NCBI RefSeq assembly: GCF_040938485.1
Contig: NW_027272868.1
Coordinates: 1-64,000, forward strand
Origin: Diadema antillarum
Lineage: Eukaryota
Reading direction: 5' to 3'
Length of the DNA stretch: 64,000 nucleotides
Under the pieces are notes generated by a model, which worked only from the letters and a program-made list of their open reading frames with translations, ran no database searches and was not told where the DNA came from. A program made the position numbers and the translations under genes. Below are positions 19,174 to 46,983 of this stretch, piece after piece (within the stretch, counting starts at the first letter, position 1; every line of letters starts with the position of its first letter).

Positions 19174-19361
19174 CGCATCCCCTTTCCAGCTCATCCATCT
19201 GGTTGAGGAAGGACTCCACTGAGATACCGGCAGCTTGAGACGGTTGCTGCAGAAACCTGCTCGGGATGCGGTCCAGCGCATCCTTCTCCGGGATGCCACC
19301 AAACCCAAGGTTGAGGAGGAGCTCTTCCGGGTCATGTCGTGCAATAAGAAGGTCATCGATG
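19174..19361 (-). CDS. ITPRID2: ITPRID2/SSFA2(KRAP)/TESPA1-family gene, exon encoding the IP3R-binding (KRAP_IP3R_bind) domain
   Basis: Translates to (S)IDDLLIARHDPEELLLNLGFGGIPEKDALDRIPSRFLQQPSQAAGISVESFLNQMDELERG, matching the recalled family motif DPEEIL.NLGFG..D...IPSRF..S.A.GI...FL..Q. Acceptor ctccag| and donor |gtaaag; 188 nt, phase 2 to 1. The symbol is family-level only. Confidence 0.88.
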
Positions 19362-19944
19362 CTGGAGTTGGTAGAACAAAATGGAACAAAAATCTCTATC
19401 AATCACAGCAGATGCACTTTCAGCTAACAAAATGCTGACCAGAGCCATAGAATGTTGTGCTTTGTGCACCAAGTGCTTTGAGCACCAAGACATATTGAAA
19501 AGATACTGTGTTTATCATAATATTTGCTTTCTTTTTATGGTATGAAAAAATATAGATAGGGTAAATACAGGAGAAGAAAGTATTGAGTCAATTTATTGCA
19601 GTAATTCTTCACAATTATTCAAGGGAAAACCTCATCTCAGAAATTAGCTACATGACAGTTCAACTTTTTTTTTCCCCCCCAAGACCATAACATAACTTGT
19701 GTTGCTTAGTACATTTTTTTCCCATAATGAAACATATTTTCATATCTCACACTGTTCCTCCTACATATATTTATTATGGCATCATACAATTGTACAGTTG
19801 TAGATGACATCACAAAATGTGCAGCACTATTTGATAGTGCATAATCAGCCCATTACAAAGATTTATCATCGAGACACTATTTGGAGTGTAACTGCTATCT
19901 AGTTGACTTTGTCTTCATTCAGCAAAATCACCTCTGACACTACC

Positions 19945-20165
19945 ATCATTATCACACCTGGGATCATAATCATCATTCCTATCACATCAACAACCATTAT
20001 CACACCCTTTCTTTCTTCCTCATCATCATTATCATCATCATCATCATTATTGTTACTATCATCATCATCATCTGTTTCCATTATGGTCAACTTTTGTTCA
20101 TCACCATCACAATTACCATTTTCTTTGTTGTCTAACTACATGTACCATCATCGTCCTCCTCATCT

Positions 20166-20201
<36 letters not shown>

Positions 20202-20340
20202 TCATCGTCATCATCGTCATCATCGCCATCATCGCTGTCATCATCATCATCGTCATCATGGCCACCTTTGCCATCATCAATATGAAAGCCAACATCATCA
20301 ATATCTTGAATCAGCATCAGGAATAGCATCATCATCATTG
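19945..20340. repeat. Compound (CAT/CGT/TAT)n trinucleotide microsatellite
   Basis: Long imperfect CAT arrays. Confidence 0.95.
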
Positions 20341-42714: not shown

Positions 42715-43382
42715 CTGTATACGCTATAATTTTCGCGTACATAAATTTTCGCGAATTGCCGCTGTCACACATTTTCGCGAGTGGTTAAATTCGCGATTGG
42801 AGGACCAGAGAAAATATGAAGTGGTAAAGAAAGTGTGAATTTTCAACTTACTAGCAAATAAGAATGACACTAGTTATACACTGCATGAAAAAAACTTATC
42901 AAACTCTGCGAACTTGTAAGTTAGAATTCAACATTTTTGAAGTGGTTTAGTCCATCGGGCTAGATTTCTGACGAGTGGTACGAGGGGTACGAGTAAATTC
43001 AGCAGCAACCAGCTGGAGCATACGAAGCCCCGGCCCCTAAAGTTGACATACAGTACTTGTAAAGAGACGTAACGGCATGCAAACTCAAGAGCTAGTACTA
43101 GTACATGTAATCAAGGGTGACACTCTGCGCGTTTGTAACGTTGTGGCACAATAAGTAGACGTGGACGTGCTATAATATGTACGTAAACAAGCTTAGCCAG
43201 TATGGTCTGTTCGGTAAGCCGTGACATGGTATACTAGTACATTGTACTGTAATGTCCGTATCATCAAGGCAAGGGATTCATTTGGGAAGGTAATATTTTC
43301 GCGTGTTGTTAATTTCGCGAATAGCTCCCGACTCGCGAAATTCGCGAAAATAAAACCCCCGCGAAATATATAGCGTATACAG
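42715..43382. mobile_element. TA-flanked Tc1/mariner-like MITE, 668 bp
   Basis: TA|CTGTATACGCTATA ... TATAGCGTATACAG|TA; TTCGCG motifs shared with the 15287 element. Confidence 0.85.
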
Positions 43383-45558
43383 TACATGCTAGGAAATGAT
43401 ACTGTTTCACACTGTGGCGACTTGATGTACAAAATTGTGGTGATTGAGTTGTACAATGATATTCAAATAGATGAAGAAACTCCCAGGAACATAATTTAAA
43501 AATAAAACTAAATAGTCAATATCAAATTATTTATGAACCAGTATCAAAATGCTATTGCTCCAATGTCATAATGGTGTGTACTTTTATCACTACTGTAGGA
43601 ACAATTGAGAATGGCAAATACTGTCACTTATATTTGGAGCATTTAATAGCACTTTTGTTTTCCAGCATTTCTATTCTGTTTTCACGGTTTCACTTTAATA
43701 CACTATCAGAAACAGTTGTAGCATAAAGGAACAAGCAGCACAGATTTTTTTTTTTCAACTACTATGGGAACATCAAAGTGCAGCATTATAGTCCTCCAAT
43801 GACCACTACTAAAAAATACCACAGACTGCAATCTCCTGCAATAGTCATCAACAGAGGTGACCTAGTCAGTCTTCCTAATTACAGGGTGCACATATTGAAC
43901 AATGTGCACCTGCAGGAAATTCTCACAATGAATTTGTCAGCAAATCCTGATTAAAAAAATTCTTGGAGATGAGTAAATTGGAAGATTAAAAATACAATGT
44001 ACTTTGCTACAAATGTGTTGTCACAATTTGCACTTATTTCTTCACAACTGATCATCTCCAACAGCTACATTAGTTATGATTTTTTTTTTTTTTTTTTGCT
44101 TCGGTCAGACATCTATACCTTCAACAAATGTACAATCATCTCATTACCTGCTATTTTTTTTCCATGAACATACATGTACACAAATATTTATGAAAATTAC
44201 GCCATTATTTCATATCAGTGATGTACAATTGTACATACAGTGTGGAATTTATTTGCAAAATAGCAGATGAGGGTATCTTATCTGTGTGATAAGAATGCAA
44301 CATTCATTCCTGTATTTATTCTCCTGCAGGTGAAAAAACAAAATATAACAGGAAACCTCTCTCAAAAAATGATGTATCGCCGTTGCTCTCACCTCCAAGA
44401 AAGCGTTTCTACGTGAGAACATTTGATTTCCACAGGCAGTGAATGTATCAGGCTCATAAATTACAACAACAGGAAAAGCAAAGACTTGCCCATTAAAGAC
44501 CTTGGATTACTAGTCAGGAACACAGTGAGATTAGTTTAGAGACCATGGCAGTCCTGATTGATATGCATGAGAATCAAGATCATATCCCTGCACGGACTCG
44601 TGATGTGAAACTAATTACTGCAAATCTTTTAATCTTTGTTGTTTTGGCGAGTTATCTCTGATAATCATCTAACAATTAGTCATTCATGATAAACCATTAC
44701 GTTGCCCTTTCCAAGGTATTATTGAGCATATGATATTCGTATACTGGTATTGCATGCCCTTTCCAAGGTATTGTTGAGCATATTTTACACGTATACTGGT
44801 ATTACAGTTAACACGCACTATTCGTTCACCCAAAAGAAAAGATTGACAAGTTTCATTGCACAACTACTCTAACTGTGAGATAAGCCTGTGCTCTAACAAA
44901 AATTTGGGAGATGTCCAAAGTAGCCAGCAGCACAAGTCTCACTTGTGTGGAGCTAGTAAAGTTTGTATTTCTGAGGATTTATACTGAAATTGAAGATATT
45001 CATGAAAAGACAACTGGATATTAACCCAAAGTGCAAAATACTTTGCTTGAATGTCGCATGCTCCATAAACACTAGACAGTAACTATTGAGCTGTACCATT
45101 CCGAAAACAGTATGTGTTTTTGATGTTGTTTTTCATCTTGACCATCATCTGAAATTTTATATAGTACATGAGTACTCAAGTACCAGGTATTAATTCCCCC
45201 TCCTCCTTCAAAAATAAGAATAAAAACAAAGAAGAACAATGATAAAAAATTGTGGAGATGTGAGTAGTGAATTGTACACACTGTAGATGCATTTACATTG
45301 TACTTCAGGCTGATCTTAGAAAGTCCAATACCCTGGGTTGTCTATACTACAGTATCAATCATTCTGGTCCCATGTAGTAAGTTTCAACCCACGGGTTTGG
45401 CATTGAAAAAAAAAATCTTCTTATCTTCAGACTGGGATTGGATACTGCCGAATAAGGGCAGGCATAAATATTTACTTGTCAATTTTTCATCAATGTGTAA
45501 ATTTTGCAGAGCGAGCCCATTACTCCAGCTAGTGTGACTTCATGCATGCACTTGACAT

Positions 45559-45572
45559 GTTTCCATGGCAAC
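45559..45572. promoter_or_regulatory. RFX X-box consensus motif
   Basis: GTTTCCATGGCAAC matches GTTNCCATGGNAAC. Confidence 0.5.
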
Positions 45573-46865
45573 CAGACAGGTGAGCACACATGTAGATATA
45601 ATCGTATTGCTTTATACACACTTCATGACTGTTTGAGAAAGAGAGGGATTCAGAAAATAACCACCATGTGAACCACAAGTAAAGACTTCACTCACAGACC
45701 CTTCTAACTGTATGATACAGCAGTTCATTTCAACCAACAATGAACACATAAAAAATGCAATTTCTGAATGGTTTATGGACAAATCAGATGATCAAATGGT
45801 GCCAATACATGACTAGGTTTTCATAATGATACTGATAATAATAAATAATGCTCATAATAACAATATTAATGATTTAATACTAAACAATAGTAATGATGAT
45901 AGCAACAACAACAACAACAACAATGATAATAATAGTACGGAGTAATAATTATAATGTTAAACATTTTACCCCTTACTTCAGTGGGATTTTGGGGTATGGG
46001 ATCATTTTGCTTGCCCCACAATGAGGTTTTACTGCGCTGGACAGGCAGACGAGGGGGTTTGAAGCATCCTGTAATACTTTACAGCCTAGCCTCTCCTCAT
46101 AGAGGGGGTTTCAGACTTTGATGACTGCTTTGTAATCACATTTCTGACAAGCTTATTGAACATGTTACTGAGTTAATGAGACACTGAAATGCAAATCTTT
46201 ATAAACAGCAAAGACTTTCTAAACAGCAACAGTGTCATATAAACTTTGCAGCCTGTCAGTAAAAATTATGTAACCCTGCACATGTTCAGATGTAATGAAA
46301 AAATATGCACATGAATATAGACCAATTCGGTTTGTGTACTGTTTTTGTTTTTTTTTTAATGGTAATTTCTAACTGGGGGCTTCAAGTGTCTGTATGCCTA
46401 AACAAGATAATTTACGCACTGACATAGCAACACACCTGGCTCACTGCATTTTTAACCCATTGGAAGTGCTTTTGTTTTTCTTTGGAAGCCCCTCCCCCGG
46501 TTATACTGTAGATGCCAGAAGTTACAGTGCTCTAGAGTCGCATTCATCTACAATGTTGTACAGGACCAAGTTATCTTTGCCTCCTTGATTAAGCATGAGA
46601 CTAAAATCATTAATGCATATAACTATCAACATTACTGACTACGAATGGCTAAACTTAATTTGAGAAATGGGCTTGGGTGGAAGTCATTCAGTTGCGTGGA
46701 GAAAAAAAAAATCAATTTACACTATTAAACCATGAAGCACATTCCTCATCACGTTTGCAAACAAGGATTATGTGCTGCAAGTCTGAAATAGCTCAAAGTG
46801 ACAACTTGTATCCCTTGAAAAGTGATTTCATCATAAATAGCACAAAATAGAGAAGACTTTATTAC

Positions 46866-46983
46866 TTGTTTATAAGGAGATGCTCGTCAATCTCGGACAC
46901 ATCTTCCCTTCCTGAGTAACCATCCACAGCATCTCTGGCCGTCTCCTGAGACTGACCATTGTGGCTCGATGGCCGGAACAAGG
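46866..46983 (-). CDS. ITPRID2: ITPRID-like gene exon
   Basis: Acceptor tatccag| after a pyrimidine tract, donor AA|gtaata; 118 nt, phase 1 to 2. LFRPSSHNGQSQETARDAVDGYSGREDVSEIDEHLLIN is in frame with the 42448 exon. Confidence 0.7.

Follow-up and report, generated by a model that had tools for sequence, protein, structure and literature searches.

The first 64,000 nucleotides of contig NW_027272868.1 (C1980) of the sea urchin Diadema antillarum, referred to here as the window, cover part of the locus of the single KRAP/ITPRID-type gene of this species. The gene lies on the minus strand. Its annotated messenger RNA (mRNA) encodes a 379-residue leader, whose last exon (exon A) is spliced across a 22.9-kb intron to the exon holding the core of the predicted inositol 1,4,5-trisphosphate receptor (IP3R)-binding domain. 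Our best explanation, to which we assign a probability of about 0.68, is that this long form is accompanied by a conserved alternative first coding exon, exon C, located inside the 22.9-kb intron, and that another candidate in the same intron, exon B, is a chance open reading frame (ORF). A sequence-only reading of the window had proposed at least three interchangeable N-termini on one IP3R-binding exon. The results point instead to two forms in Diadema, not three: an annotated long form, and a short form that is probable and unannotated. The exons at issue are as follows (as with all features of the gene, they are on the minus strand).

46983-46866, minus strand: canonical internal coding exon, residues ~287-325 of the RefSeq protein XP_071482146.1 (P0003), 100% identical by tblastn
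42448-42287, minus strand: exon A, an internal exon of the canonical coding chain that encodes residues 326-379 of the same protein, placed by mapping P0003
34774-34579, minus strand: exon B, a 64-codon ORF with ATG (MFIEPSEP...AIFLK plus TG, then GTGAGC), judged a chance ORF
25608-25397, minus strand: sequence 5' of the exon C ATG, the extension given to exon C in the sequence-only reading up to an acceptor-like CAG at 25609-25611, possibly 5' UTR with or without a splice further upstream
25396-25164, minus strand: coding part of exon C, likely alternative first coding exon, with ATG at 25396, 77 codons and donor TAG/GTAAGG
19361-19174, minus strand: common exon with the core of KRAP_IP3R_bind (IDDLLIARHDPEELLLNLGFGG..RIPSRFLQQPSQA..), 100% identical to residues 380-441 of P0003

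The junction frames were read directly, and the homology searches used single exons or database proteins as queries. The reading of the frames confirms that exons 42448-42287, 34774-34579 and 25608-25164 each end in a phase-2 GT donor in frame with the acceptor at 19361. This acceptor (CAG-C) accepts a phase-2 donor, and the joined reading continues IDDLL. Exon A ends ...GHSFS plus AG before its phase-2 donor CAG/GTTTGA; exon B, in the window copy, is joined as C-IDDLL; and exon C, which reads MAMKESVAS...PLQRLS plus AG, is joined as S-IDDLL. It is also correct, as had been stated, that joining the 42287 donor to either of the other exons meets an early stop, at codon 4 in exon B and at codon 21 in exon C.

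Exon C and the short leader of Lytechinus pictus

The L. pictus gene LOC129254487 (XP_063969098.1, isoform X1, P0006; XP_063969161.1, isoform X2; older model XP_054748928.1) encodes a KRAP-domain orthologue of the Diadema protein, and its isoform X1 is the second-best full-length match of our profile search. The two isoforms and the older model have a common N-terminus (MRSCYPTSSPGDDDVFIASGYNNSGTRTWVSSCQGNYFDFDTQKLQIL...), a homologue of Diadema exon C, which after 70 residues leads directly into SIDDLLIARHDPEE. The conserved core of exon C comprises residues 14-58 (25357-25223) and aligns to residues 6-49 of the L. pictus leader with 43.5 bits (phmmer) and 24/44 identical residues. A tblastn comparison of the whole P0006 protein with the 64-kb window recovered exon C at 25357-25226 (E 1e-10). 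In this comparison, the core of exon C is better conserved (54% identity) than exon 16335-15620 (28%) or the large exon further downstream (47%). In both species, only a few codons separate an upstream ATG from the conserved core, and the motif conserved in the short leaders can be written as D-[ED]-D-x-V-F..S.G.N..G.R.W.SSCQ.N.FDFD..KL..L. From the end of the core to the junction, a stretch of 20-22 residues, the two urchins have unrelated sequences. Diadematoid and camarodont urchins split roughly 200 million years or more ago. No long-leader isoform turned up in L. pictus, whereas Diadema is annotated with the long leader only.

The ATG, the 77-codon ORF and the donor of exon C are intact in both Diadema haplotypes, the second of which is found on contig C1475. 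Exon C is the sole intronic candidate with a donor matching 5/6 consensus positions. The codon usage of its core scores +0.34 bits per codon, similar to the known exons, while stop-free windows of the intron average -0.33; this score is a weak test, with a small training set. An in-frame stop is present six codons upstream of the ATG. Based on these sequence comparisons, exon C is most probably a genuine coding exon, which is the first coding exon in the L. pictus models and is usable in Diadema. For exon C, the L. pictus conservation and the RefSeq models uphold the proposal of an alternative N-terminus on the IP3R-binding exon; for exons A and B the proposal is not sustained, as described below.

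Several observations weigh against the use of exon C in Diadema. RefSeq annotates each Diadema locus with a single long isoform and lists none of the C type, and the L. pictus short leader comes from RefSeq gene models. A region search for other long proteins with an L. pictus-type leader returned only L. pictus itself, and C-type conservation is seen in one other species, by searches that had little power to reveal more. No candidates were obtained in a word search with Diadema exon C, which is a weak blank, as the C sequences of Diadema and L. pictus share no 5-residue word. The last 19 residues of exon C are unconserved and have a poor codon-usage score. Between the haplotypes, the exon differs by 5 replacements and ~3 silent changes, which is indistinguishable from neutrality. 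RNA support for exon C was not obtained: two tiny "echinoderm metagenome" runs covered only intronic repeats over 19230-25229, leaving exon C and the 19361 exon at zero depth, and are uninformative either way.

The single annotated isoform, the lack of RNA support, the haplotype ratio without clear constraint and the unconserved tail would all fit a situation in which Diadema produces no form other than the annotated long one. Exon C could then be a conserved relic, an exon that is used in Lytechinus and silent here, or a conserved element caught by gene prediction. However, the start codon, the reading frame and the strong in-phase donor have been kept in both haplotypes, and the protein conservation of exon C with L. 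pictus exceeds that of most of the gene. A silent relic would not keep such conservation over the long separation of two urchin orders. We regard production of the long form alone as unlikely.

Other candidate origins and relatives of exon C were examined. A transposon fragment was rejected, since the exon occurs once per haplotype. ORFs on the opposite strand beside exons B or C were checked for a nested gene and nothing was found. Individual Pfam scans of exons A, B and C and of the 46983 exon gave no match. The vertebrate N-terminal RRxxW motif was without support in the searches as a homologue of exon C and, by eye, fits the long leader better. A scorpion KRAP (Centruroides sculpturatus P0020/P0160, residues 38-72, ..LFSSASQSFLNFTTKKL..) matched the C-type motif with E 0.01-0.02 among 163 proteins, too weak for use; this match near the N-terminus may be due to chance in a low-complexity region, or the motif may be older than the echinoids. 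The segment of exon C at 25282-25240 (..WFSSCQENFFDFDAGKLE..) contains a conserved [FY]-F-D-F-D after Ser/Cys, which may loosely resemble an FFAT-like motif (two phenylalanines, acidic tract) for targeting to the endoplasmic reticulum.

The long form and its predicted IP3R-binding domain

The 62-residue KRAP exon served as query for an exhaustive profile search, which identified P0003, a protein of 1376 residues that is 100% identical to the window exons. P0003 is XP_071482146.1, which is named "uncharacterized protein" in RefSeq and is encoded on the window contig of D. antillarum. Across the exon joins it reads ...LLINK-DKLLQRR...HSFS-SIDDLL. A sister protein, XP_071479490.1 (P0153, 1615 residues), is encoded on the allelic contig C1475. 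The region C1475:640942-699297 is colinear with the whole window (1-64000) at 92-99% identity, with kb-scale indels, and thus represents the second haplotype. The protein of the window copy is the shorter of the two (1376 vs 1615 residues); its 3' exons probably run off the contig start, as the window begins at contig base 1 and the 1615-residue haplotig model extends further. PF14722, the Pfam family of KRAP_IP3R_bind, is present at just two places in the 1.75-Gb assembly, the window locus and its C1475 copy. There is therefore one KRAP-type gene per haplotype, in agreement with the single gene that had been proposed. RefSeq lists the two haplotype copies as separate genes.

The exon chain was obtained by mapping P0003 back to the DNA (tblastn and genome search). 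Its remaining exons are the following.

C1980:70589-69942, minus strand: leader exon beyond the right edge of the window, placed by mapping P0003
C1980:64433-64203, minus strand: leader exon beyond the right edge of the window, placed by mapping P0003
16335-15620, minus strand: next coding exon after the common exon (GFSLVGGLRSLGPALRR... to ...SLEFEE), placed by mapping P0003
~11114-11019, minus strand: small coding exon (LSSGDQEMMEEAGSTTPAPQADLDRE), P0003 residues 680-711, borders approximate
9027 to ~7111, minus strand: large, mostly disordered coding exon, 3' border approximate and taken from the RefSeq model
6718-6647, minus strand: coding exon, placed by mapping P0003
5887-5831, minus strand: coding exon, placed by mapping P0003, after which the RefSeq model ends early

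The first 285 residues of XP_071482146.1 are encoded past the right edge of the window. The exon at 46983-46866 starts in phase 1, has two spare bases (AA) at its end and is without an in-frame ATG. The long form runs from the two exons outside the window through 46983-46866 and exon A and, across the 22.9-kb intron, into the 19361 exon. Exon A, with three coding exons ahead of it, is therefore internal and not an N-terminus.

Exon A shows 1 synonymous and 0 replacement differences between the haplotypes, and its segment has matches in Acanthaster planci (XP_022111456.1), Anneissia japonica (XP_033101619.1) and Antedon mediterranea (XP_071942359.1). In these three proteins an exon A-like segment (..LTNSD[IL]I.LA.Q...) is found directly upstream of the domain core, as in Diadema. 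The same three proteins, together with those of Ptychodera flava and Saccoglossus kowalevskii, also contain the long-leader motifs of Diadema, as judged by eye (among them W-K-[KR]-R-V-A-[DE]-Y-V and W-[LV]-[DN]-S), and none of these five long-leader ambulacrarian orthologues contains the C-type motif. By these comparisons, exon A closes an old canonical leader of 379 residues that is conserved in sea star, crinoids and hemichordates. The short C-type leader may be specific to echinoids, or it may simply be unannotated in other groups.

Exon 19361-19174 alone matches PF14722 with 47 bits (cut-off 27) over profile positions 26-72, in line with the KRAP/ITPRID assignment of the sequence-only reading, and the full RefSeq protein matches with 46.4 bits over positions 4-72/151. 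The second half of the profile (positions 73-151) and the other domains of the family gave no match in a Pfam scan of the 1615-residue P0153 (E<=0.01). By the Pfam criterion, the Diadema protein is a member of the KRAP/ITPRID family, with IP3R binding as a prediction. In the long form, exon A already contributes to the PF14722 match, which starts at residue 362 (profile position 4), and the last ~18 residues of exon A align to profile positions 4-25. The match of the L. pictus short form starts with profile position 19, on the exon border. Thus, an alternative leader takes the place not just of the sequence preceding the domain but also of its low-information, Ser-rich start.

Further downstream, the C-terminal segment is conserved, by eye, with L. 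pictus and A. planci, and the ORFs P0001 and P0002 of relatives are 45% identical to the large exon. In the haplotig, the large exon carries a 3-base in-frame insertion at 7885 and ~3% substitutions, and allelic protein diversity in the gene is high.

Other arrangements of the upstream exons and further features of the window

Exon C might also be an internal exon of transcripts that start at the canonical promoter. It could be an alternative or "poison" exon entered via the 25608 acceptor, cutting the long ORF short, whether or not translation re-initiates at the ATG at 25396, or a cassette exon entered via an internal acceptor such as that at 25346. The site at 25609-25611 is a decent acceptor-like site (pyrimidine-rich, CAG), and the acceptor at 25346 is in frame and would give HSFS-S-PDEDEVF..., beginning exactly at the conserved core. 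However, the pyrimidine tracts of the in-frame internal acceptors are poor (10/20), the L. pictus models begin translation within the exon without a long leader, and the ATG just upstream of the conserved core is kept in both species. We consider an internal role of exon C improbable.

Exon B is without a homologue among 155 KRAP-family proteins or in Pfam. The haplotig C1475 lacks one base of exon B at 34586, seven bases ahead of the donor; this 1-bp deletion changes the phase from 2 to 1, so that the join to 19361 is out of frame in that haplotype. ORFs of this kind, with an ATG, at least 50 codons and a phase-2 donor matching at least 4/6 consensus positions, occur four times in the 22.9-kb intron, two of them being plain junk, and 0-3 times in each of the other phases or on the other strand. 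A transposon fragment or repeat was rejected as the source of exon B, which has a single copy per haplotype. As it lacks a homologue, is broken in the second haplotype and belongs to a class found at chance-level frequency, exon B is in our reading a chance ORF rather than a coding exon. Three or more mutually exclusive first exons A, B and C, each with its own N-terminus on the IP3R-binding exon, would account for the shared frame with 19361 and for the early stops of the A-to-B and A-to-C joins, but with exon A internal to the 379-residue leader and exon B disqualified as above, such an arrangement is very improbable, and the claim of at least three N-termini is not supported.

Under the preferred explanation, with exon C as an alternative first coding exon, a start within the intron would provide a 77-residue leader in place of the whole 379-residue leader, and the short form would keep the IP3R-binding core and everything downstream of it. 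We infer that exon C is transcribed in Diadema; its transcripts may start at an internal promoter rather than be spliced from upstream non-coding exons.

The 22.9-kb intron also contains repeats at 21194-21570 and 23960-24830, which reach word depths of hundreds to thousands, with many variant copies, in two small "echinoderm metagenome" runs labelled as RNA-Seq. These look like high-copy, possibly transcribed families, and the repeat at 21194-21570 recurs at two further places on C1475. At ~48300-49800 on the minus strand, within the intron that precedes exon 46983, a GC-rich unit is present in several copies, tandem or dispersed, whose open frames resemble one another (..KPHDQFSSNLAGSIPRGLG.QFVKMGTMPHPGGPQG..); they probably belong to a repeat family. 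An intact 860-codon ORF is present at 1712-4294 on the minus strand, in the same orientation as the KRAP gene and downstream of the final exon in the truncated RefSeq model. Its N-terminus is rich in lysine and its C-terminal half in Cys and His, and its Pfam match, to an Rv2179c-like exonuclease, is weak and sub-threshold (16 bits). A metagenome scan with the KRAP exon as query confirmed nothing.

Relation to vertebrate KRAP proteins and significance

The vertebrate proteins KRAP (ITPRID2/SSFA2), ITPRID1 and TESPA1 have KRAP_IP3R_bind in common with the Diadema protein, in which their LGFG and RIPxRF motifs are also present. Vertebrates have three such paralogues, whereas Diadema has one gene per haplotype, and its protein differs in matching only the first half of PF14722 and in having F-L in place of the FF pair. 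TESPA1 binds IP3R1 via F187/F188 (PMC5472764). At this Phe-Phe site the Diadema protein reads RIPSRFLQQ, the first Phe being kept and the second replaced by Leu. The homologues of Acanthaster, Gryllus, Owenia and Cherax likewise have F-L, while that of Limulus has F-F. KRAP associates with IP3Rs, for which its N-terminal region is reported to be responsible, and also with actin, for which it uses its C-terminal region; it licenses IP3Rs for calcium release in mammalian cells (PMC8302619). A literature search found no functional test of a KRAP-type protein in any echinoderm.

Animal genes very commonly have alternative first exons. What is described here is an alternative first exon of the ordinary kind in a known family, a modest gain in annotation and not a surprising one. 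The original framing as three swappable N-termini was overstated, and the Diadema annotation is corrected with respect to the probable short form, which is missing from it. It is conceivable, although we hold it only tentatively, that in echinoids an internal promoter within the 23-kb intron drives a short KRAP isoform, in which a leader of ~75 residues with a conserved acidic-aromatic motif of its own (..DEDEVF.., ..W.SSCQ.N[FY]FDFD..KL..) replaces the ancestral 379-residue leader. This motif is reminiscent of short linear motifs, for instance FFAT-like signals, and the single invertebrate IP3R regulator would then come in two differently targeted forms, functionally analogous to the vertebrate paralogues. 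The eggs of sea urchins have long served as a classic system for studying calcium waves evoked by IP3. If the long and short forms are both made, as is probable, they would differ in everything ahead of the IP3R-binding core and may differ in localization or partners, and isoform-specific knock-down or tagging would be possible.

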